IMG/VR virus record: IMGVR_UViG_3300024336_000005
Coordinates: 62,001 to 126,000 of that record
Length of the DNA stretch: 64,000 nucleotides
Strand: one strand, 5' to 3'
The notes below the pieces were generated by a model. It worked only from the letters and a program-made list of their open reading frames with translations, was not told the DNA's origin and did not search any database. Shown piece after piece: positions 7,910 to 59,297 of the stretch (position 1 is the stretch's first letter; each line of letters opens with the position of its first letter). The position numbers and the translations under genes were made by a program.

Positions 7910-8268
7910 GGAAGATCTGTCGCAACTGTTACTCGATCTGTGGCCGCTGCGCTCGTTGTGAGCGCTTGCGGCTGATGAAGTTGACCAAGAGGAAGATCAA
8001 GAAGAACTCCGAGAAGAGCTCTCGGGTTAAGGAGTTGGGGTGTGGTTGGTCCTTCTCGTTGAAGGACCCGCTCTACTTCAAGGAGGAGGATGAACAGGGG
8101 GAGTTGATGGAGTTCAGCTTCCCCAGGGAGTTCGAGGTGAGCTGCGTCGGGCTGGAGGACGTGGATGTTTTGGCGGCGGCCCTCGATGGCTGCAACGGTG
8201 AGCTCAGCATCGCCGAGGAAGCGGCGGTCTGGGAGTACCGGATCGTCAGCTTGGATGAGGTGGCATGA
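7906..8268 (+). CDS. hypothetical protein
   Basis: ATGA overlap at 7906; start corrected from ORF track. Confidence 0.7.
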   Translation: MRKICRNCYSICGRCARCERLRLMKLTKRKIKKNSEKSSRVKELGCGWSFSLKDPLYFKEEDEQGELMEFSFPREFEVSCVGLEDVDVLAAALDGCNGELSIAEEAAVWEYRIVSLDEVA

Positions 8269-8834
8269 CTGTCTTCACTCGTCGTAGTGTCCACTGGAGT
8301 GGGAAGAGCACGCCTATCGAGGAGCTGCTTAGCTTCGAGATGGACAAGAATGATGGCCGTTTCACTGATGCTGAGAGGAGGAGGATTAAGCTTCTTCAGC
8401 GAGACAAGAAGTGCACCATCTGTGGCTTGGTTCCGACTAAGGCGCTGAATGTGCACTGGGGGCACTCCCATGGTGGCACCAGTCTGCATCTCTTTGGAGA
8501 TGTGAACGGGCGGCTGGAGTGCTTCAACGTAGATCACATCATCCCTAAGGCCTGCGGTGGCAACAACTCCTTCTTCAACTTGCAGCTCACTTGTGAGAGG
8601 TGCAACAGTGAGAAGGGGAACAACTTTGACATGGAGATGGTGCATCCTGAGCGGCTGAAGAGTGGAAGCACTCGACGGGCACACAACGTTCTGGTGCTTC
8701 GACAGAGAGATGAGTTGGCGAAGCAGGTCGCTTCGTTGACTGAGCAGTTGAAAGAGGCCCGTCGGCCTCAAACGTTCCGAGAGGTCCTGGAGAATAAGCT
8801 CCGCCGCCTCATCCCCACTGGTTACTGGAGTTAA
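8265..8834 (+). CDS. HNH endonuclease
   Basis: CTICG...VDHIIPKACGGNNSFFNLQLTCERCNSEKG HNH motif. Confidence 0.85.
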   Translation: MTVFTRRSVHWSGKSTPIEELLSFEMDKNDGRFTDAERRRIKLLQRDKKCTICGLVPTKALNVHWGHSHGGTSLHLFGDVNGRLECFNVDHIIPKACGGNNSFFNLQLTCERCNSEKGNNFDMEMVHPERLKSGSTRRAHNVLVLRQRDELAKQVASLTEQLKEARRPQTFREVLENKLRRLIPTGYWS

Positions 8835-8837
8835 GGA

Positions 8838-9668
8838 ATGCGCATTCGTACTGATCTGTTCTTCGCTTCGAAGGTTGAGTTCAATTTGTTCTGGATTGGA
8901 GACAGTGGGTTCTCCTGTGGGGGTGACACCTTGCGGAAGATCTTCGGCCTCAGCGCTACTGGTTGCGGTGAGTCCGCCCACTGGGAGATGGTCTCCTCGA
9001 AGGGAGCAATGGCACAGTTCACGCTGGGTGTCTGCAAGGGTTGCCTGAACAAGGCGGCACCTCAGGCCGAGACCCGCTACTGGGCGGCTGATATCATCAG
9101 TGCCGTGTGGCACCCCAATCATCGGGATGTGGCCTGTGAGGAGCCCGGTTGTGAGGAGACGATCTCCTACAACAGCAAGGCACATGGCAATGTGTGTGCC
9201 TTGCATGGATGCAAGTACATCCATGGGTATCTGAAGGAGATGTACATCGAGAAGGACTTCCTCGAGACGGAGAAGGAGCTGAAGTTGATCTGGGCAATGT
9301 TCCCGGAGAGTCGTCCTCAATACATCGAGGTCAAGAGCGACCGAGATGTGAGGGACTACATGCTGGTCCATGAGGGTGGCATGGAAGAGACCATCATGGT
9401 GGCTGCCAAGCGGTTGCTCAGCAACCCCGATGATCTGGCACACCACTTCCCTCCCTACCGGGAGCTCCGGGAGCTGGGTCGGACGTGCCTCTTACCGTTG
9501 CACCATCCTCGGGTGGTGTACTTGCAGCGACAGTGCGCCCCGGTCTTGGCGGCCATCCAGAGTGGTGACTTCAAGAGCTTGGCTGGGTTCATTCATGAGC
9601 CTCCCGTTGAGGTGGAGTTCTCCACCTTCGCGGCCTTCAACCCTGCTGATGTCATGGAGATGAAGTAA
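8838..9668 (+). CDS. hypothetical protein, Cys-rich
   Basis: ORF in array. Confidence 0.8.
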   Translation: MRIRTDLFFASKVEFNLFWIGDSGFSCGGDTLRKIFGLSATGCGESAHWEMVSSKGAMAQFTLGVCKGCLNKAAPQAETRYWAADIISAVWHPNHRDVACEEPGCEETISYNSKAHGNVCALHGCKYIHGYLKEMYIEKDFLETEKELKLIWAMFPESRPQYIEVKSDRDVRDYMLVHEGGMEETIMVAAKRLLSNPDDLAHHFPPYRELRELGRTCLLPLHHPRVVYLQRQCAPVLAAIQSGDFKSLAGFIHEPPVEVEFSTFAAFNPADVMEMK

Positions 9669-13640: not shown

Positions 13641-13809
13641 TCCCACCTCCCTGAAGTCCGGTGAGTCGTTCCCTACGGGTTGAGCGACTCCCGGCAACCT
13701 CCCCTTGTTTATCTTTGTTGTTGATATAGGTGTGTATGAACGTAGTGTACGACTGTTGTTGTACCCTATGGGCATGCACACCTGTGTATGTTGGCAGACA
13801 GGAGTGTGT

Positions 13810-14379: not shown

Positions 14380-17300
14380 TACTCTTTTTGGTAAGAACGC
14401 TGACGAGAAGTCCCTCCTCGAGGAGGCAGGCGACGGTGTTGTGGACAACAGCACCGTCATCGACCACGACAAGAAGACTGACCGCATTCTCGCCGATACG
14501 GCCGTGGTTCGCGGTGCCGCCATGTTTGTCCAGACGGACGACTTGTGGCACCACGGGGTCAGTCAGCACGGGCTGGCCCGTTCGAACACCCGCTACGGGG
14601 AGACCACCCAGTTGGTCTTGGTCCCGGAGGGTTCCGATGGCTGTGAGACCATCATCATCCACAGTCTCCGTGGTGGAACTCAGGAGGTCACCGTTAAGCG
14701 CCGGGCCCTGCCGATGCAGGAGGAGGTGGTCGAGCGAGTCCTCGCCGCCACCGATGAGGCACTTGCGCCCTACATGCGGAAGTACTCCTGTCGCACGCGG
14801 GAGCAGTTGGTGGGGAGGTGGCCTGCGCAAGGCCGTGGCCCCATCTACATCGACAGTGTCGCCACGCGCTTGACGCACAACGACTGGGTCGATGACCTGG
14901 GAGACGTGCTGAGCGATGAGCTGCTGCGCTCGATGCAGCGGTACATGAAGGCCATGAGACAGGACATCCCGCCGAGTCAGGATGATGTGGAAATCATCCA
15001 CTGGGCCATGGGCGAGGCTGGCTTGAAGCCCGTTGAGCTCTACCAGATGTTGCTCATGCAGCAAGAGACCCGACAGCGGCTGCTGGTCCTTCTCGGTGAG
15101 GACGAGTTGAAGCGGGACTCCGCCCTCAACTCGTACGACCCTTCTCCGGCCATCCCGGACGGGTGGGGCTTGCCCTCCTCCTTGGAGGAGCCGATGAAGT
15201 GCAAGAAGGCGTGGAATGCCTTCCTCAAGTCCGGTGGCGAGGTGGCGCTCTCGTTGGACCACATCGTCTTCGATGACGGCGATGGCTTCGACCGGGTGAC
15301 CATTGAGGGCCTTGCGGCCATCAAGATGACCCGAGATGGAGTGAACCGTCTGGTCAAGGCTCACAGTGGCATCACGCTGCTGGAGACTACGGCCAACAAT
15401 GGTCAGTTCCCGCCGTCCCATCGGGAGTTGACCGCCGCAGTGGTGGCCGTTCACGAGAAGTGGGCGGACTCCTTCGAAGCGTGGCAGGAGCGACGTACGC
15501 CCAGTGTCCGCTGGGTGGCTCTGGGCAACCTCACGGGTGGCATCGGTGGCGGTGGGGGTGACCTCAACGGCACCGATGAGTTCGACGTCGACGCGGACAT
15601 CCGTCCGAAGCCCGGCTTCCAGGACATCGACCCGGTGGAGTTGAAGAACCCGGAGGAGGCCTGGCTCAAGAAGCAGGTCATGGGGATGTCCACTCCGGAC
15701 CCCATCACTCAGTTCTTTGGGGACACCGGGTCGTTCGCTTCGGACCTACCCATTGGCCGTCGGAAGATTGGGGAGGAAGTGTACCTCCCCGGAGGCCACC
15801 CGTTGGCTCAGGGCATCATGGACATCATGGCGGCTGCCAATGGCCAGCGGGACTACGTCTCCTTGGGTCTGACGGATGACGCCTCCTCGATGGTTCGCAT
15901 GGAGTGGCCGAAGAACCTCGTGGAGACCTCCACGATGATGATGCCGACCATGGCGGGCGACAAGGTGGAGGTGGAGGTGTTGGTCTTCCACCCCGTCTAT
16001 GAGGGGGTGGACTTGTTCAACCTCATCCTCAGCACCGATTGGGTGGACCACGCGGGCCAGGTGAAGGACTTCTTCGCCGACTACACTGTCAAGGTGAATG
16101 GCGTCAAGCAGTGGGGGCTCAACCAGCAGGTGAGCCCTGGGCAGAAGGTGATGGAGGCGTCCTATACCGACGACGAGGGCCAGTACTGGTTCAAGTCGGT
16201 GGACCTCGAGATTGAGCCCGGTGCTCGGGTGGCCTTCGACGCGGGCATGCCGGTGGGGGAGGTCATCGAGACCGTGCGGGACGGTCAGACCTTCTGCCAG
16301 GCCCTCGTTCGGGTCTGGCCGGCGAAGGTCAATGTCGGCTACCGTCATCGGTTGCACGAGATTGATGCGAATGGCGAGGCCGTTCCCATCGACGAGAACG
16401 ACCCTCTGTTGGCCATCTACGGCATCGAGCAGCAGGGAGATGTGCTCTGGCACGTGATGTTCAAGAGCCGCTTGGACTTCCTCATCACCAGCCTGGGCTG
16501 CACCAAGGTGCCGGTCCTGGCCCTGGTGGAGACGGGCGAGGAGGCCATCCCGATGGTGGTCGAGCAGTACGCGAAGGTGCACTTCCCGGCGCTGTTCAAC
16601 TGGCTCTCGCTGCTGAGCGAGAACTACCACGAGGCCGTCTCCGACATGACCGAGTGGTCGGAGGGGGACGGTGAGGACCTGCTGCGGCTGGTCACCGAGG
16701 AACTGATGACCATCCAGACGCTGGCCTTGGAGCTCATCGTCGAGGATAACATCGGTTGCGTGGCCGACTACATGGACGACGTCAACGTGGCATTGGGCGA
16801 TGCTTGCATCGGAACCTCCAGCAAGTTCCCTGACCGGAACGGCAACGAGACGAGCGCCTATGGTGCCCTCCTCGTTGGGAACACGGGGCGTCTCTACCCC
16901 CTGTTGGACAGCCTGAAGCCCGGTCCGCAGAACGTGTTCGACCTCCCGGAGGAGGCGCACACGAACATCACCAAGATGTTCAAGGCCATGGGCTACCTGT
17001 ACAACGACCGGAGGCCCTTGGGTGCCGACAGGTTGCAGCAGATGGTGGGAGAGCAGTTCTTCTTCACCCATCCCCTGCGTCGTGCTCCGCGTCGTGTGAA
17101 CGACCGCTGGCACCGGGCGGCGAAGGCCGTGACGTACACCAAGGACCCGAGCCTGTTCAGCTCGGGCATGGTCGGCAACTTGGTGAGCCAGTTGAGCGCC
17201 GCGATGTTCCCCATCAACGATGGTGGGCTGAACTTGTTCCACCCCTCGGAGGAGCACATGAAGGCGGCCAACTGGGACTATGAGAAGGCGATGCGTCTCC

Positions 17301-22032: not shown

Positions 22033-22163
22033 AGAGGGATGCTCAGGGCAGGTTCATACCTGGAGGTTCGAATCCTCACGGGCTACGGCCCGGAGGGCAT
22101 TAAGTAGTCCTTCCTTTGAATCAGAGAGGAGGGAGCGCCGAAATCAACAGAGCTGATTCCTCT
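22033..22163 (+). ncRNA. circularly permuted tRNA-like RNA (YrlA-type topology)
   Basis: T-arm GAGG-TTCGAAT-CCTC, then closed stem CGGGC-TACG-GCCCG, then D-like GGGC-ATTAAGTA-GTCC; outer stem AGAGG..GCTC/GAGC..CCTCT. Confidence 0.6.
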
Positions 22164-28196: not shown

Positions 28197-28724
28197 ATGA
28201 ATAAGATCCTTCCCCTTGCCTTTGTTCTCCTTGCGCCTCTTCTCTCTGGCTTCACTATGTGCAGCGAGATCCCTGACGGACCCTTGCTTTGTGGTAGCGC
28301 CGATGGAGGAGTGTGCTCTTCTCCCTTCTACATGAACCGCGCCTATGGCGAGGTCACGGATAAGAAGGGTAACGTCGTGATGAAGCTCAATGTGGTCTAC
28401 TCAGTAGATCCGGCCATCGCTTTTGTCACCGTCAATGGAGTGGCTATGGAACTGGGGTGGCACGCGCTCTCCATGACCTTCAGGGCCGACAATGATATCT
28501 GGACCTTCAAGCCGGAGAAGGCCGACCAGATTAGGCTTATCTACAGGGCGGCCCTTCCGGGTGGCGTTCGAGGGGAGGATGTTTATTACCTCTTCTCGGG
28601 AACGAATGCCCTTCAGGGCAACCAACCCTCACCGAGCGAAGAGGGCATTCTCACGGTACATGGGATCTTGGGGAATCGACTACACAAGGGCCTGGCCAGT
28701 GTGTACTGGAGCAAGAGAAAGTAA
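28197..28724 (+). CDS. secreted hypothetical protein
   Basis: signal peptide. Confidence 0.8.
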   Translation: MNKILPLAFVLLAPLLSGFTMCSEIPDGPLLCGSADGGVCSSPFYMNRAYGEVTDKKGNVVMKLNVVYSVDPAIAFVTVNGVAMELGWHALSMTFRADNDIWTFKPEKADQIRLIYRAALPGGVRGEDVYYLFSGTNALQGNQPSPSEEGILTVHGILGNRLHKGLASVYWSKRK

Positions 28725-33652: not shown

Positions 33653-34711
33653 ATGAGTGATTATCCAGATGGAACCATTATTGTAGGTCTCCAGGATGGA
33701 GACGAAAGCAAGGGAAAGGTGGCGGCGGCTCTTTGTTCGCTACCGCAAGTGACCCATTGTGTTCGCTATAGTGGTGGACAGAATGCAGGCCATGTTTTCT
33801 ACAAGGATGGCCTACAGGTTGTCACTCATATCATTCCCTCTGGGATTGTATATGGGAAGGTCTCGGTGATTGGTCCTGGCTGCGCCTTCTCTGAGAAGGG
33901 CTTCTGGGCTGAGCTAGAAGACATTTGTGATGCACTGGGGGAGACCATGTTGAATCTCTCTCGCTTGATCAAGATCTCCCCTGCTGCTCATATCGTCCAG
34001 GACAAGCACATCGTTTTGGATGAGGCGACAGACAAGATTGGATCTACCAAGAGAGGGATCGCCCCAGTCTATGCCGATAAGGCTATGAGGACGGGCATCC
34101 GAGCCGAGAGCATTCCAAGCCTAAAGCCTTTCTTGTGGGATACGACTAAGCTCAATGACCCAAAGAATGTCATCGTATTTGAAGGGGCTCAAGGCTTTGG
34201 CCTTGATCCTGATGTAGGAGATTATCCCTATATCACCAGCTCCTCCTCTCTCCCTGGTGCGATCAACAATGTTGGTGTGCCCATCTGGGCAATCAATAAG
34301 ATTGTTGGAGTTGCAAAGCTCTATGCGACCTATGTTGGGACCAAGGAATTCGAGCCAGATCTAGAGATTTTCTCAAAGCTTCGTGAGCTCGGAGGGGAGT
34401 ATGGCTCGACCACAGGCCGTCCTCGACAGTGCAACTGGTTGAATCTTGATACTCTCATCACTGCTATTCGAACCTGTGGTTGTACTACGGTCGTCTTCAG
34501 CAAGTGCGACATCATTGAACAGCTTGGCGTTTTCAAGTTGATTGATGGTGGTACAGTTCGAGAGTTCGGGAATATGGCTGGCATGATTGCTCACATTAAG
34601 CGAGAGCTTAAGGAGGAGGCACCAAGTACAAGTCTAATCTTTAGTGGCAGTCAATACACAGTTGAAGATGACTATGGCCATCTTGCTGAAGAGCCGATGG
34701 GAGAGATTTGA
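33653..34711 (+). CDS. purA: adenylosuccinate synthetase (short form)
   Basis: GDESKGK, GGQNAGH, GSTKRGI, FEGAQG, YPYITSS, EYGSTTGRPR. Confidence 0.9.
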   Translation: MSDYPDGTIIVGLQDGDESKGKVAAALCSLPQVTHCVRYSGGQNAGHVFYKDGLQVVTHIIPSGIVYGKVSVIGPGCAFSEKGFWAELEDICDALGETMLNLSRLIKISPAAHIVQDKHIVLDEATDKIGSTKRGIAPVYADKAMRTGIRAESIPSLKPFLWDTTKLNDPKNVIVFEGAQGFGLDPDVGDYPYITSSSSLPGAINNVGVPIWAINKIVGVAKLYATYVGTKEFEPDLEIFSKLRELGGEYGSTTGRPRQCNWLNLDTLITAIRTCGCTTVVFSKCDIIEQLGVFKLIDGGTVREFGNMAGMIAHIKRELKEEAPSTSLIFSGSQYTVEDDYGHLAEEPMGEI

Positions 34712-40232: not shown

Positions 40233-40757
40233 ATGAGTCAAATTTTAGATAGCATTGAGGCGAGGTGGGAAGCATTGCTCACTGCCGCCAAAGACGCCCA
40301 AGCTGTTAAGATTAGCACTTATAATCTATACACTGGAATGACTTCTTACGGGACTATGGTGTCCTCTGGGAAGACCTTAAGTTCTCGCTTATTCATGAAT
40401 TTGGTGGCGCCTAAGGCAAGGTTCCTTGTTGGCATCCCTCCTTTTATTGAATGTGTTGAGAATTGTGAGCACTGTCAAGAGCAACGGAAGAGGTCGATGG
40501 CTAAGTTCGCCTTTCATAAGGAGACCTGGCCGTCGATTGACTTCCGCTTTGCGAAAGAACATCACCTTAAGCTTTACTTGTTTAAGATTGATGGTAAGTG
40601 GACTGGATTTACCGGTGGGGTGAATCTATCAAATTCCCAGTGGGATGATCTTTTAATTAGACTTAGTCCAGAAGATGCTGAGAAGTGTAACGTCCTTTTT
40701 GAGAGCCTTTGGGCCCCAGCTACTAACCCCCTTGAAACTTTTTCCTCTTGGAAATGA
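40233..40757 (+). CDS. phospholipase D-family (HKD) nuclease-like protein
   Basis: HHLKLYLFKID...TGGVNLS. Confidence 0.65.
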   Translation: MSQILDSIEARWEALLTAAKDAQAVKISTYNLYTGMTSYGTMVSSGKTLSSRLFMNLVAPKARFLVGIPPFIECVENCEHCQEQRKRSMAKFAFHKETWPSIDFRFAKEHHLKLYLFKIDGKWTGFTGGVNLSNSQWDDLLIRLSPEDAEKCNVLFESLWAPATNPLETFSSWK

Positions 40758-40772
40758 ACTGAAAGAATTAAA

Positions 40773-42416
40773 ATGAACTACGGTAAGACTGTTAGCAACG
40801 CTATCAACAATGGTCCAGTTTCTCAGCCTATCATCGGTAGGCCCGAGATGGTAAAGAACAGCACTGAGGGCTTTGTCTTCAACACCACTTCTGAGGCAGC
40901 GCTTGAGCGCTTCCTCATTCTTGGCACTGAAGGCGGCACTTACTATGCCAGCGAGAGCCGAGCTACAGTTGATGCGGCAAAGAATGTCATCGAGATGGCT
41001 GTTGCTGGCAACGTAGATGTAGTCAGTACCATCATCAAGGTCGCTACTGCTCGTCCCTCTCGTGCGCCAAAGATGGAGCCTTCCTTGTTTGCTCTTGCAG
41101 TTTGTACCGCAAAGGGCACCCCCGAGGTAAAAGCTAAGGCGCTCAGCGCGCTGAGCGCGGTTTGCCGTATCCCCACTCATCTGTTTACCTTTCTTCAGGC
41201 CCACAAGGATCTGGGAGGCAAGACCGGTGGGCGCAGCTTCCAGCGAGCCCTACAGAATTGGTATCTTGAGAAGGATCCCTCTAAGCTGGCTTATCAGGTT
41301 GTGAAGTATCAGGGGAGGAATGGCTGGACTCACCGTGATGTTCTTCGGCTTGCCCGCCCTAAGGCTCAGACCCCTGAGCAGAACTCTATTTTGAGTTGGG
41401 CTGTGAATGGTTCGCTGCCTCTGGCAGTAAGTTCTGAAGCGGGTGCTTATCTTGTGGCGGCGAATGAGCTGCTGCGAGGGGAGCCGACGAAGCAGCGTGC
41501 AATCAACTTGATTGAGTCTCATGGGTTCACCCATGAGATGGTTCCGACTAAGCTTCAGAAGGACCCTGATATCTGGGCAGCTTTGCTTCCCCGCATGCCT
41601 ATCAATGCAATGGTTCGCAACCTTGGTCGGATGACTGCCAATGGTCTGATTGTTCCATTCAGTGCCACAACTCAGAGCGTGGTGGAGAAGCTTGAGAATG
41701 TGGATGCCCTTCGCAAGAGCCGCATCCATCCGCTCAACGTTTACGTGGCCTTGCGTACCTATCAGCAGGGCAAGGGCACTCGAGGTTCGTTGACTTGGCG
41801 TCCTGATGCTCAGATCTTGAGCGCACTAGAAGGAGCATTCTACAATGCTTTCGGGAATGTAGAACCGACTGGTAAGCGCTTCATGGTGGGCCTGGATGTA
41901 AGCGGCAGCATGGGTGGATTCTATGGCTACGGCTATAACAGTACTGTGAACCAGACTGGCCTTATGGGGATTCCTGGGTTTACGCCTTATGAGGCAGAAA
42001 CCCTTATGTCCCTTTTGGTTGCAAAGACTGAGAAGCAGACCTTCTTTGGTGGGTTTTCAGACAACTTCACTCCCCTTGCTATCAACTCCCGTGATAACAT
42101 GAGCTCGGCTCTTCAGAAGATCCGATCACTCCGCATGGGTTCCACTAGGATTGCTGCTCCGATGGAGTATGCCACCAAGAACAGGATTCCGGTGGATTGC
42201 TTCCAGATCTACACCGACAATGAAGTGAACATGGGCGGACATCCTTGTCAGACCCTTGAGAAGTATCGTCAGGCTACTGGCATCAATGCGGCCATGGTCG
42301 TATGCGCTATGACCTCTACGAATTTCACTGTGGCCGACCCGAAGGATCCGAAGCAGCTTGATGTTGTTGGATTTGACACGGCAGTGCCAGCTTTGATTCG
42401 ACAGCTTTTGGTGTAA
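40773..42416 (+). CDS. rsr: Ro60/Rsr TROVE-domain RNA-binding protein
   Basis: LERFLILGTEGGTYY, KYQGRNGWTHRDVLRLARP, VRNLGRMT, IHP, vWA MIDAS DVSGSM, YTDNE, DVVGFD. Confidence 0.97.
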   Translation: MNYGKTVSNAINNGPVSQPIIGRPEMVKNSTEGFVFNTTSEAALERFLILGTEGGTYYASESRATVDAAKNVIEMAVAGNVDVVSTIIKVATARPSRAPKMEPSLFALAVCTAKGTPEVKAKALSALSAVCRIPTHLFTFLQAHKDLGGKTGGRSFQRALQNWYLEKDPSKLAYQVVKYQGRNGWTHRDVLRLARPKAQTPEQNSILSWAVNGSLPLAVSSEAGAYLVAANELLRGEPTKQRAINLIESHGFTHEMVPTKLQKDPDIWAALLPRMPINAMVRNLGRMTANGLIVPFSATTQSVVEKLENVDALRKSRIHPLNVYVALRTYQQGKGTRGSLTWRPDAQILSALEGAFYNAFGNVEPTGKRFMVGLDVSGSMGGFYGYGYNSTVNQTGLMGIPGFTPYEAETLMSLLVAKTEKQTFFGGFSDNFTPLAINSRDNMSSALQKIRSLRMGSTRIAAPMEYATKNRIPVDCFQIYTDNEVNMGGHPCQTLEKYRQATGINAAMVVCAMTSTNFTVADPKDPKQLDVVGFDTAVPALIRQLLV

Positions 42417-42432: not shown

Positions 42433-42876
42433 GTGGACATTCGCACTCGCAAAGACATCCCCTCTAATTGGGGTGGCCCATATAAGGCCATCAAAATTAC
42501 CTCTGTTACAGCAACCGTATATAATGGCAAGGCCTCAGACTGCGCAATCACCGCCTCCTGGTTTAGTGATTTTAGCAGTCTGCAGTCTGACCCTTATTTG
42601 CTAATTAACCTAGGGACCGAAGACTGCTATCCATGTCGCATGGATGCCTTCTTCGATGCTTATTCTCCTAATGGCGATGGCAGCTTTTCCAAGCGAGACA
42701 GTGCCCCTGGTAAGGAAGAACGATTTTTAATTCCAGAGGGAATCAGTGTAAATGTTCATACACTTGAAGGAATTAGCGCCATAGTCGGTCCTAGCTATTT
42801 GGTTGTTGGCACTCAAGGTGAGGTGTATCACAATAGTATAGATTGGGCCAATGAGAATCTTCACTTTGTAAGTTAA
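42433..42876 (+). CDS. hypothetical phage protein
   Basis: ORF directly after rsr. Confidence 0.7.
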   Translation: MDIRTRKDIPSNWGGPYKAIKITSVTATVYNGKASDCAITASWFSDFSSLQSDPYLLINLGTEDCYPCRMDAFFDAYSPNGDGSFSKRDSAPGKEERFLIPEGISVNVHTLEGISAIVGPSYLVVGTQGEVYHNSIDWANENLHFVS

Positions 42877-42886
42877 TCATTTTCTG

Positions 42887-43080
42887 AAGAACTGATGTAA
42901 GAAGATTATCACAACTATAACGGCCCTAAGGTAGCGAGAGTCGGGCGACCGATGTTCCGCAATATAGACTCCTAATTCTCCAGTAGAATAAGAGTACGTG
43001 CTCAATGCCGTATCCCACTTTGTGGAGCGGTAATAGCGGCAGGGGTTCAACCCCTATTTCTTCTTCAACTCTTTGTTCTT
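42887..43080 (+). ncRNA. putative Y RNA 1
   Basis: 5' AAGAACTGA pairs with 3' TTGTTCTT; AAGAAGA/TCTTCTT upper stem. Confidence 0.7.
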
Positions 43081-47318: not shown

Positions 47319-47493
47319 ATTGAACTGAAGAGATCTAGGTTATCACTATAAAGGCTCGGCCCTCTTAACAGAGGTTTGCAGGTTCGAATCCTGTCGATCC
47401 GAAAGGATCGTGGCGAAATGGTAAACGCACCGAATATAAGTACCGGGGACCTTGAAAGAGGAATCCAATCTCCTAACTCGTCCCTTGTTCAAT
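47319..47493 (+). ncRNA. putative Y RNA 4, YrlA-type with permuted tRNA domain
   Basis: ATTGAACTGA/TTGTTCAAT; T-arm GCAGG-TTCGAAT-CCTGT, CGATCC-GAAA-GGATCG, D-arm GCG-AAATGGTAAA-CGC. Confidence 0.85.
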
Positions 47494-47498
47494 GATTT

Positions 47499-49132: not shown

Positions 49133-49250
49133 TTGAACTGAAGGATATTGGTTATCTTTTCTGAACAAAAACGTGCTGGGTTCGATTCCCAGGGGTTCCA
49201 TAAGGGGCCCGCAGGCGCCTAGTAAACTTCCGATTCCACCCCTTGTTCAA
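49133..49250 (+). ncRNA. putative Y RNA 5, YrlA-type
   Basis: TTGAACTGA/TTGTTCAA; T-arm CTGGG-TTCGATT-CCCAG then closed stem GGGTTCC-ATAA-GGGGCCC. Confidence 0.8.
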
Positions 49251-50780: not shown

Positions 50781-50868
50781 CTAGCGAGCGGGCGGTGGAC
50801 GCCCAACCGTGCTGTACAGCGGTGGTGCTTTGATGCACAACTGGGTTCGATTCCTAGGCGCTAGACCA
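50781..50868 (+). tRNA. Tyr-like class II tRNA with 8-nt anticodon loop
   Basis: ACCGT-GCTGTACA-GCGGT, GTGC..GCAC arm, 5-bp D stem, ACCA. Confidence 0.65.
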
Positions 50869-52038: not shown

Positions 52039-52121
52039 GTGCCCTTTGGCGGAATGGTAGACGCACGTAATGGTCCCCTCCGGCTTAGAGGGGTGCAGGT
52101 TCGACTCCTGTAAGGGTGCCA
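52039..52121 (+). ncRNA. tRNA-like RNA lacking a normal anticodon arm
   Basis: acceptor, Leu-type D arm and T arm present; only CGTAATGGT then CCCCTC-CGGCTTA-GAGGGG. Confidence 0.6.
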
Positions 52122-52129
52122 TAAAATAA

Positions 52130-52218: not shown

Positions 52219-52638
52219 ATGAAAGAAATTGAAATGCATATTGATAAGCAATTCTTAGTAAAGCGTAAGGCCTGCCAGCCACAAGTAGATTTATTTGTTG
52301 AGGCTTTTGGGGAGAAGGCTTCCGTTGAGGTGACTACAGAGAACCTCAAGAAAGCCTTCGCTGTTGGACTTGATGTTAGATGGCTGACTGGTCAGTTTAC
52401 TGAGCTCAAGCCCCTGCTAACAGGAAAGTTTGAGTCTTCTGAGATTGTAATCTACTTCCAAGATGGCTTGTTTCATCGTGAAGATGGTCCTGCCATCCAA
52501 TGGAAGGATGGCAATGGAAAGTTTTGGTATCGTCATGGAAAGTCCCACAGGACAGATGGTCCTGCAAGGATGACCCCATGGGGGGACAGCTGGTGGGTTG
52601 ATGGGGTTAAGCAACCCGCTCCCACTGATAAGACTTAA
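52219..52638 (+). CDS. hypothetical protein with HRxDGPA repeats
   Basis: FHREDGPAI, SHRTDGPAR; start corrected. Confidence 0.8.
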   Translation: MKEIEMHIDKQFLVKRKACQPQVDLFVEAFGEKASVEVTTENLKKAFAVGLDVRWLTGQFTELKPLLTGKFESSEIVIYFQDGLFHREDGPAIQWKDGNGKFWYRHGKSHRTDGPARMTPWGDSWWVDGVKQPAPTDKT

Positions 52639-52705
52639 AGCTGAGAGGAAAGCCCCATATTCTAGGAAGCCTTGACAGTTCGGAGAGACGAACGCTTTAT
52701 CTTAT

Positions 52706-53039
52706 CCAGGAGGTGGGCTTAGAAGCAGCCATCCTTTAAAGAGTGGGCATAGATGAAGCTTAACCGATTGATCTTATCTAATCATGACACGGATAGGAGA
52801 AGCTTAAGTTAGCACCTCTCAATAAATTCGAATTGGACCCAGGTTGGCTTCCTGGTTGGCCTTTACGAGAGAGTCTTGTAAGAAAGCGGGAAGAGACTTA
52901 GTCAGTCTTATAAAGAGAGCGAAACCGAACGCAACTCTTTGTTCTATTTTAGAACTGGTGTGAATCCTATGACGGGATGTATTTGGTTAACAAACGAGAG
53001 AATTGACTCTGCCCTCCTTTTAGCGTAATAGCACACTGG
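52706..53039 (+). ncRNA. 23S rRNA H43-H44 (uL11-binding GTPase centre) mimic with 278-nt insertion
   Basis: CCAGGAGGTGGGCTTAGAAGCAGCCATCCTTTAAAGAGT [insert 52745-53022] GCGTAATAGCACACTGG; no other rRNA sequence nearby. Confidence 0.85.
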
Positions 53040-53051
53040 ATAGATAACTTT

Positions 53052-53137
53052 GGCCGGGTGGTGGAACGGTATTCACACTGCGCTTAGAACGCAGCGCCCT
53101 TACGGGATTGAGAGTTCGAATCTCTCCTCGGCTACCA
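53052..53137 (+). tRNA. trnL: tRNA-Leu(UAG)
   Basis: CTGCG-CTTAGAA-CGCAG, ACCA. Confidence 0.93.
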
Positions 53138-53152
53138 TTAGAAAGAGATAAA

Positions 53153-53344
53153 ATGTTTCCAATAGTAAGACTCCTTGACGGAAGAGTTGCGCGTTTTGTT
53201 ATAGAGATGCGTGCCTATCCATCCCACATTGATAGATTCCAAACTCTTGGCAAGAACTCTCAGCAATTAGACCTCCCAGTTGAAGGGTGGACACTGGATG
53301 GTATTGAAAACCATCCAGAAAACCTCCAGTACAAAGAAAGATAA
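53153..53344 (+). CDS. hypothetical protein
   Basis: start corrected. Confidence 0.55.
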   Translation: MFPIVRLLDGRVARFVIEMRAYPSHIDRFQTLGKNSQQLDLPVEGWTLDGIENHPENLQYKER

Positions 53345-53347
53345 ACG

Positions 53348-53641
53348 ATGAGATATGTTTTGATGTGCCTTCTCTTCATGGGATGCACTACAGTGACCTT
53401 CCAGTTGGTGCCCACTCCTGCTCCTACTCTTCCTCCCTCGGCTCAGATGTTGATGGAGGATTGCGATGGCGTTACAGCAGATGATATTTATACACTCATT
53501 GAAGTCGAGCCCTGCAAAGGGCTCGTTCAGATGAGAGAACAAAGACTGTTAGATGCAGAGAGAATTTGTGAAGAATACTGCACTGAAAAAGATTGGTGCC
53601 ATGATCCAGATGAACGATTCGATTACGAAAGGGTAGAATAA
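53348..53641 (+). CDS. putative lipoprotein
   Basis: lipobox FMGC. Confidence 0.7.
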   Translation: MRYVLMCLLFMGCTTVTFQLVPTPAPTLPPSAQMLMEDCDGVTADDIYTLIEVEPCKGLVQMREQRLLDAERICEEYCTEKDWCHDPDERFDYERVE

Positions 53642-56045: not shown

Positions 56046-56058
56046 CGGCCACCTTATT

Positions 56059-56195
56059 AAAGAACTGACGATTTTAGATTATCATTATACCAAACCAATA
56101 AAGAGAGGGTTCGACTCCCCAGGGATGGTGAAGTGGTTTCACACATAGGCTCAAATCCTATGGAATTCCTTATTCTAAATCAATTTTTGTTCTTT
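56059..56195 (+). ncRNA. putative Y RNA 6 with T-arm, D-like arm and anticodon stem-loop
   Basis: AAAGAACTGA/TTGTTCTTT; GAGGG-TTCGACT-CCCC; ATAGG-CTCAAAT-CCTAT. Confidence 0.75.
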
Positions 56196-56197
56196 AT

Positions 56198-59164: not shown

Positions 59165-59297
59165 TCTGGTGTCGCTTAATGGTAGAGCAGGCGGCTGTGG
59201 TTTATTGCAAGGGCATTACAAGGGTCTTAACCTTGGTAGGCCTCATAACCGCCCGGGGGAAACTCCATTGTAGGTTCGACTCCTACCACCAGAGCCA
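59165..59297 (+). tRNA. interrupted tRNA (Asn-like) with 47-nt insert in anticodon loop and long variable arm
   Basis: TCTGGTG/CACCAGA, G73, CCA; GGCGG-CTGT[59199-59245]TAA-CCGCC. Confidence 0.75.

Follow-up and report, generated by a model that had tools for sequence, protein, structure and literature searches.

The hairpin at positions 52932-52961 of the window (the whole 64,000-nucleotide stretch analyzed here, from the 204-kb phage contig IMGVR_UViG_3300024336_000005) appears to be a loop-closed copy of the stem of the phage's own Y RNAs, lodged in the variable insert of an RNA that imitates helices 42 to 44 (H42-H44) of 23S ribosomal RNA (rRNA), the GTPase-associated centre (GAC). The Y stem is the element by which Y RNAs bind Ro60, and binding of this hairpin by the Ro60 protein encoded in the same window is plausible. 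We lean slightly towards this reading, for this phage only. As far as sequence can tell, what is new is a Y stem grafted onto a structured RNA that is not a Y RNA.

The hairpin and its counterparts in the window

The 14-mer CAACTCTTTGTTCT is present in the window only at 43066-43079, the 3′ strand of the Y RNA named Y1, and at 52932-52945, even when two mismatches are allowed; the identity asserted by the original prediction is exact in coordinates and letters. Its second copy is followed, after an ATTTT linker, by AGAACTGGTGT (52951-52961), the counterpart of AGAACTGATGT (42888-42898) with which Y1 begins. The two Y1 strands thus occur in reverse order, joined as a hairpin by a 5-nucleotide (nt) loop, as had been proposed. 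The 5′-type strand, which matches Y1 at 10 of 11 positions, includes the closing C (52955), the bulged pyrimidine U52956 and G57 (52957), and its single mismatch, A to G at 52958, keeps the pairing as G.U. Likeness to Y1 is confined precisely to the helix: the flanks of the hairpin are unrelated to Y1 and contain no Y body sequence.

The repeated 14-mer by itself is unremarkable, the window holding 44 repeated stretches of at least 14 nt, about one-third of them tRNA T-arms, where dinucleotide shuffles give ∼10 repeated words. The improbable part is the recurrence of the pairing partner from Y1 just after the second copy. For both strands together in hairpin register the expectation is ∼6e-8 for the pair, or at most ∼0.008 when corrected generously for multiple opportunities (∼30 non-tRNA repeats × 2 sides × 12 offsets). 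Against these values, and with the motif found in six other non-coding units on the same strand, chance resemblance is very improbable, despite the frequency of repeats and a stability of the isolated hairpin (-6.3 kcal/mol, z = -0.6) that does not exceed that of shuffles.

Besides Y1 and the hairpin, the two-stranded motif occurs in five units of the window, namely Y2, Y3, Y4 and two inter-tRNA spacers (Table 1). The pair beside GAAC covaries within the genome (A:U, U:A, C:G), and GAACTGA occurs eight times on the plus strand between 40 and 57 kb, where roughly one occurrence is expected from the length searched. The 3′ strand of the hairpin follows the Y pattern, with U-U and then G plus the helix complement (CUUGN′C); its CUCUUUGUUCU contains an additional U, a feature shared with Y1, Y2 and both spacers. 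After the bulge, Y1 reads GAUG, Y2 GACG and the hairpin GGUG. Rfam, searched at gathering thresholds and at expectation values (E) up to 10, has no match for Y1, Y2 or the hairpin. The presence of Ro60, on which the original prediction depended, is confirmed by TROVE and vWA_Ro60 domains in the open reading frame (ORF) at 40773-42416. The Y RNAs, at least four, and the two spacer units are dispersed over the tRNA array up to 14 kb from Ro60, unlike in most phages, where Y RNAs are clustered beside the Ro60 gene. A fifth composite Y signature, at 34209, lies inside a coding region and is not significant.

Table 1. Coordinates of the hairpin, its host RNA, the Y units and related features; positions refer to the window unless a locus (L) of another phage is named
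Feature	Position	Strand	Remarks
3′-type strand of Y helix, CAACUCUUUGUUCU	52932-52945	+	14/14 identical to Y1 43066-43079
Loop AUUUU (DNA ATTTT)	52946-52950	+	closes the helix at the end that is open (5′/3′ termini) in Y1 and Y2
5′-type strand AGAAC-U-GGUGU	52951-52961	+	10/11 identical to Y1 42888-42898
Competing neighbour hairpin	52912-52940	+	AAAGAG 52912-52917/CUCUUU 52935-52940 and GCG 52919-52921/CGC 52930-52932; predicted pairing probability 0.82-0.99
Host RNA, mimic of 23S H42-H44, ∼350 nt	52697-53047	+	closing stem 52697-52709 with 53036-53047
H43-like part	52706-52742	+	23S 1052-1088, 34/37; compensatory 1058:1080 change
Variable insert, 279 nt	52743-53021	+	between rRNA positions 1088 and 1090; contains the Y hairpin
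H44-like part	53022-53039	+	23S 1090-1107, 17/18
tRNA-Leu(TAG)	53052-53137	+	starts 4 nt past the closing stem of the mimic
Ro60 gene	40773-42416	+	TROVE 2e-39, vWA_Ro60 9e-47
Y1	42888-43079	+	terminal Y helix, GAUUAUC box, 23S 1912-1936-like box (42913-42937, 24/25), T-arm-like hairpin
Inter-tRNA spacer closed by Y-type helix	44014-44103	+	UGAACUGAAG / UAUUUGUUCA
Inter-tRNA spacer closed by Y-type helix	44457-44528	+	CGAACUGAAG / CAUUUGUUCG
Y3, canonical Y RNA	47320-47495	+	GAACUGAAG, GGUUAUC, T arm, CCCUUGUUCAA; orthologue of L124 unit at 14860
Y4, canonical Y RNA	49133-49248	+	GGUUAUC; orthologue of L124 unit at 13774
Y2	56058-56197	+	AAAGAACUGACGA ... GAUUAUC ... T arm ... UCAAUUUUUGUUCUUUA; ends at tRNA-Glu 56198
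Leader hairpin	L124 9967-9994
Leader hairpin	L125 9968-9994
Leader hairpin	L126 4860-4887
Further leader hairpins	L146, L148, L163, L167, L168, L174, L186, L193, L200, L210
Y RNA with 23S domain IV box	L221 ∼8060-8330		unrelated phages (this and next row)
Y RNAs with 23S domain IV box	L219/L228, L214, L227, L229

Y stems and loop-closed helices in other Ro60-encoding phages

The motif was compared with 79 further Ro60-encoding phage loci (1.47 Mb), the counts in flanking regions being made over 77 distinct phages and ±1.5 kb. GGTTATC is enriched 6-fold and GAGCCGA/GGGCCGA 3-4-fold in these flanks, and the enriched motifs share one Y RNA layout: helix-C-Y-GAAG-N6-GGUUAUC-body (often tRNA-like)-CUUG-helix. 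This layout agrees with the published bacterial Y motif GNCGAAN0-1G, which resembles vertebrate GGUCCGA (PMC4201824), and with the CGAA motif of the Yrl1 and Yrl2 RNAs of Thermus phage phiLo (PMC12135203). The helix of the window takes the form GAAC-U-GA / UU(U)GUUC, the canonical one being GNC-Y-GAAG / CUUGN′C. In the closest relative, L124, whose Ro60 is 53% identical, two units align with Y3 and Y4, and GAGC-C-GAAG / CUUGCUC stands where the window has GAAC-U-GAAG / CUUGUUC, a compensatory change from G:C to A:U together with a C-to-U change of the bulge. Because of this alignment and compensatory change, the helix of the window is regarded as the orthologue of the canonical Y stem, and these comparisons give good support for reading the hairpin as a Y-type helix. 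Within its 5′ motif, GAAC-U-GGUG, the hairpin retains C, Y and G, with AA replaced by GU; a G at the first A of GAA is also found in natural Y RNAs (GGGCCGGAG in L137, L195 and L199).

Enrichment is confined to composite signatures; the exact string GAACTGAYG shows none overall in the Ro60 loci (22 occurrences for ∼23 expected). A fuzzy search with open and hairpin patterns was rejected as returning mostly false positives, its matches in L183 being AT-rich intergenic repeats. Single-protein scans of IMG/VR for DUF7873 and Ro60 yielded no more than the source contig and some remote, tRNA-less loci.

The reverse-order, loop-closed arrangement of the strands has natural precedent beside Ro60 genes. 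In a strict scan, a perfect CUUG-helix-loop-helix-CCGAA hairpin lies at most 70 nt 5′ of Ro60 in 13 of the 77 phages, for ∼0.5 expected. These leader hairpins stand directly upstream of the Ro60 start codon and overlap the ribosome-binding site (RBS); in an alignment of ten of them with the L139 hairpin, 96.6% of positions are paired and double changes occur at 4 of 8 pairs. The leader hairpin is a candidate operator for Ro60 autoregulation. The Ro60 leader of the window itself (40740-40772) keeps CUCUUG and GAACUGAAAG, with no clear helix.

A second precedent is provided by L139/L144, where a tRNA-like RNA (9157-9282; 39.7 bits with the Rfam tRNA model) lies 780 nt 5′ of Ro60. It has an open acceptor stem and D and T arms, and in the position of the anticodon arm it carries CAAUCUUGUUC-UUUU-GAACUGAUG, followed by GAUUAUC. 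Read from its sequence, this RNA is a circularly permuted Y RNA of the YrlA type with a motif nearly that of the window. No description of Ro60 leader hairpins was found in the literature searched, and we know of none of a permuted Y RNA like that of L139 or of loop-closed Y helices upstream of phage Ro60. The hairpin of the window resembles these elements in its strand order (3′-type, loop, 5′-type), its closing C:G, its bulged pyrimidine and its U-U opposite G-R, and shares GUUC ... GAACUGAUG with L139. It differs in having three U rather than two and GGU rather than GAA, and in its location, 10.3 kb away from Ro60 and within the insert of an rRNA mimic, whereas the others lie over the Ro60 RBS or in the anticodon-arm position.

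Fusion of a Ro60 stem to an rRNA-like module also has precedent, in Y1, L221 and the Y RNAs of other phages. In Y1, 24 of 25 nt of 23S 1912-1936 follow straight after the GAUUAUC box, and at least five other phages have Y RNAs in which the same box (AACGGUCCUAAGGUAGCGA, H69-H71 region) comes directly after GGUUAUC. The one in L221 lies 250 nt 5′ of the Ro60 gene. Y RNAs of this kind, with a mimic of 23S domain IV, seem to form a recurrent class.

A mimic of 23S helices 42-44 as host RNA

The RNA that carries the hairpin lies in a window with 26 tRNA genes and a transfer-messenger RNA (tmRNA). Its H43 and H44 loops are intact, A1067 and A1095 included, and its 3′ end would be set by RNase P cutting at the 5′ end of the neighbouring tRNA-Leu(TAG). 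Rfam, at the thresholds given above, returns only a weak large-subunit rRNA match, and a BLAST search of INPHARED phages finds only the adjoining tRNA-Leu. A 23S rRNA gene or pseudogene fragment is ruled out, as rRNA likeness ends at 1052 and 1107, likewise in all 118 loci of the family described below. A group I intron in rRNA exons was rejected as well: Rfam has no intron match at E ≤10 in 52400-53200, and the inserts are unrelated between family members. The ORFs at 52219-52638, 53348-53641 and 42433-42876 have no Pfam or PHROG match, and no uL11-like gene was seen.

A search of IMG/VR with the exact H43 loop sequence yields at least 118 contigs (loci L005-L122), none with rRNA likeness past ∼1046-1100 and nearly all ending at 1088. 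In 66 copies the H44 loop G[CT]GTAA[CT]AGC is also present, 89-341 nt after GCTTAGAAG, compared with 29 nt in real 23S. In a set of 55 non-redundant copies, pairing in the H42-like closing stem reaches 85-98% at most positions (∼35% in a shifted control), each with 4-6 pair types, and the non-canonical contacts 1056.1103 and 1060.1078 are retained. Most of the family is situated within tRNA arrays, in the same orientation. The RNA of the window has each of the defining parts, that is H43, the covarying H42-like stem, the H44 loop and an insert between 1088 and 1090. Rfam does not include this family, and the literature searched yielded no account of a GAC mimic in a phage.

The inserts are hypervariable (60-340 nt) and unrelated between members, and that of the window (52743-53021) has no homologue in any other family member. 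Many of them (L063, L016, L088, L033, L011, L101 and others) have R-G-N-CGAAG-Y-AC at the start and GGCACCCCGNAANCGGUAAGGC at the end, while another subset has GUGCGAAAUG ... GUGAUGUGC, so that insert modules recur; the GNCGAAG of family inserts formally matches the published Y motif. A search of the inserts for other rRNA-like pieces (the sarcin-ricin loop and others) gave only noise. In the insert of the window, AAGAAAGCG (52889-52897) and AAAGAGAGCG (52912-52921) resemble 23S 1085-1093, the 5′ half of H44; the likeness may reflect partial repetition of the mimic core within the RNA, or chance.

Like the 58-nt uL11-binding domain of 23S (H42-H44, 1051-1108), the mimic has H43 (34 of 37 positions) and identical A1067 and A1095 loops, and the G.A contact 1056.1103 and U.U contact 1060.1078 are retained across its family. 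Unlike that domain, the mimics have a 60-340-nt insert where A1089 would be, which turns the three-way junction into a four-way one; position 1101 is A in the mimic, and the flanks are not rRNA. The mimic may also be compared with the ribosomal-protein leaders that imitate rRNA (L10, L1), being likewise a short rRNA-like fold off the ribosome with a presumed ribosomal ligand. Those leaders are cis-regulatory and stand 5′ of ribosomal-protein genes in cellular genomes, whereas the mimic stands alone as an RNA of a phage, within a tRNA array, and has no ribosomal-protein gene nearby.

As a whole, the mimic has no 5′/3′ terminal stem, GGUUAUC box or tRNA-like domain of the YrlA type, features that Y1-Y4 have; for this reason the host RNA is taken as a carrier of the stem and not as a Y RNA. 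Compared with the YrlA-type Y RNAs (Chen et al. 2014, PMC4201824) and phiLo Yrl1/Yrl2 (PMC12135203), the hairpin likewise occurs in a genome with Ro60, has a stem with C, bulged pyrimidine and G-A opposite U-U in a motif akin to GNCGAAN0-1G and GGUCCGA, and is linked to a second module imitating another cellular RNA. It differs in that a loop closes it inside a larger RNA, where in those RNAs the two termini make up the helix, in its core CUGGUG instead of CGAAG, in having no GGUUAUC box or tRNA-like domain after it, and in that the attached module is a 23S GAC mimic.

Possible Ro60 binding, competing explanations and significance

If the hairpin acts as a Y stem, the ring of the phage Ro60 would bind its helix through the closing C:G, the bulged U and the G after it. 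This would make the mimic a Ro60 ribonucleoprotein (RNP), as Y1 probably is with its 23S domain IV-like module, and Ro60 would stabilize or escort it. Alternatively, in line with the tether of the original prediction, the mimic would be a Y-type adaptor bringing Ro60 to proteins that bind the GAC fold, such as uL11, stalk-base proteins or translational GTPases. The sequence identity, the homology of the helix to canonical Y stems, the natural occurrence of loop-closed forms and the build of the host RNA are observed here; Ro60 binding, uL11 binding and any role of the complex are inferred.

Several observations weigh against this reading. The first concerns folding. In partition-function calculations on the full RNA the proximal stem GUUCUA/UAGAAC (6 base pairs) has a probability (P) of 0.74-0.96, while distal CUCUUU (52935-52940) is predicted to pair with upstream AAAGAG (52912-52917) with P 0.82-0.98, UGGUGU is predicted to be single-stranded and the Y-type distal pairs have P <0.01. 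The distal half of the 14-mer would thus be occupied by the competing hairpin at 52912-52940. The claim that the bulged U is kept was therefore borne out in part: U52956 is present after GAAC, but the distal pairing is not established structurally. Ro60 is reported to contact mostly the 5′ strand of Y RNA (PMC4201824), and for this reason the distal mispairing is compatible with Ro60 binding. An intrinsic terminator is ruled out as an identity for the hairpin, whose stem is A+U-rich, lacks a U tail and is not reported by a terminator scan.

The motif itself also departs from the canonical one. The 5′ strand CUGGUG is two changes away from the CYGAAG core, the second of which (U) is shared with Y1, and a GGUUAUC box is lacking after the hairpin. 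Scored with a covariance model of the loop-closed hairpins of other phages, the hairpin reaches 8.2 bits (E ∼5, partial match), a weak negative given the shortness of the model (0.85 bit per position) and the RBS flanks that it takes in. The same model gives weak, non-significant matches at 34675-34705 and 28276-28311 (E 0.4-0.6), each followed by an RBS-like GGAG.

The third set of adverse observations concerns generality. No GAC mimic lies within 10 kb of Ro60 in the 79 other Ro60 loci, and the hairpin module is absent from ∼96 other distinct mimics. Absence of the module from homologous RNAs had been named in the original prediction as refuting it, and on this count the prediction fails for the mimic family, though not for this phage. 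A Ro60 gene occurs in a single mimic locus, L040, where the mimic is without the hairpin. The composite Y signature is found in 34 of 83 Ro60 loci and in 4 of 118 mimic loci, the latter near background, and 31 kb walked along the closest relative (L124/L132) contain no GAC motif. The link between Ro60 and mimic is therefore specific to this phage, and the broader statement that the hairpin unifies the two systems fails as a general claim, holding at most for this phage. Nor do variants attest to conservation of the hairpin: the three assemblies available show 0 differences over 20.7 kb, so that in them the phage is clonal.

Finally, the 14/14 identity to Y1, in a genome whose other Y units differ, suggests recent copying, which could be neutral. 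By this explanation, which we consider unlikely, recombination or gene conversion copied the stem strands of Y1 into a hypervariable insert, where the hairpin folds without any role for Ro60. The 14/14 and 10/11 identity exceeds functional need, the unrelated inserts of the family are seemingly free to vary, head-to-tail junctions of tandem Y RNAs (L138 9155, L211 3554) give the same strand order as a by-product, and the weak covariance score points the same way. What argues against it is that the similarity ends right at the edges of the helix with no flanking Y body, that the sole difference preserves pairing (A-U to G.U), that the stem is predicted at high probability, and that the RNA around the hairpin is structured and comes from a phage with at least six functional-looking copies of the helix.

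An improbable alternative is that something else than Ro60 recognises the helix, for instance a nuclease that processes RNA or a different RNA-binding protein of the phage, and thereby defines the ends of units in the array of tRNAs and non-coding RNAs; the hairpin would then mark an internal cleavage site in the mimic, yielding a two-piece or permuted RNA. Such a role would suit the position of the helix in Y1, Y2 and the spacers, exactly at unit boundaries and often abutting tRNAs, as well as the protein with an RNA ligase domain (PF09414) encoded in the window and the permuted Y RNA of L139. It is opposed by the orthology of the motif to the canonical Y stem, whose distribution tracks Ro60 genes across 77 phages, and by the helix over the RBS of the Ro60 mRNA, which fits Ro60 as the ligand.

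Y RNAs are seen as adaptors: Ro60 binds at one end, and an effector, which in Deinococcus and Salmonella is PNPase, is brought in by the other. For most bacterial and phage Y RNAs the question is which partner this second end takes. Here the Ro60-type stem appears tied to folds with known ribosomal ligands, the uL11/stalk-base site in the mimic and the 23S domain IV box in Y1, which turns this question into direct binding experiments. A tentative generalization is that phage Ro60 RNPs carry interchangeable mimics of ribosomal centres as cargo, in some cases the H69-H71-like box and here a complete GAC mimic. If so, the targets of the Ro60/Y system would be ribosomal proteins, translation factors or host defences directed at the ribosome, and the Y stem would serve as a movable Ro60 'handle', transferable to unrelated structured RNAs as well as to the leader of the Ro60 mRNA. 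A stem so modular, occurring open-ended, loop-closed, in mRNA leaders and in a permuted tRNA-like RNA, would widen the set of potential Ro60 ligands.

The window also contains further unusual tRNA-related elements. Uncalled tRNA-like elements with T arms occur at 22066, 22308, 28151, 46836, 48639, 52099 and 54427, and one at ∼52040-52125 has no obvious anticodon arm. A 130-nt tRNA-like RNA with an insert lies at 59165-59294, a tRNA with a four-base anticodon (TGTA) at 50781-50868, and the phage tmRNA (23869-24490; 83.5 bits) carries a ∼340-nt insertion relative to the Rfam model.
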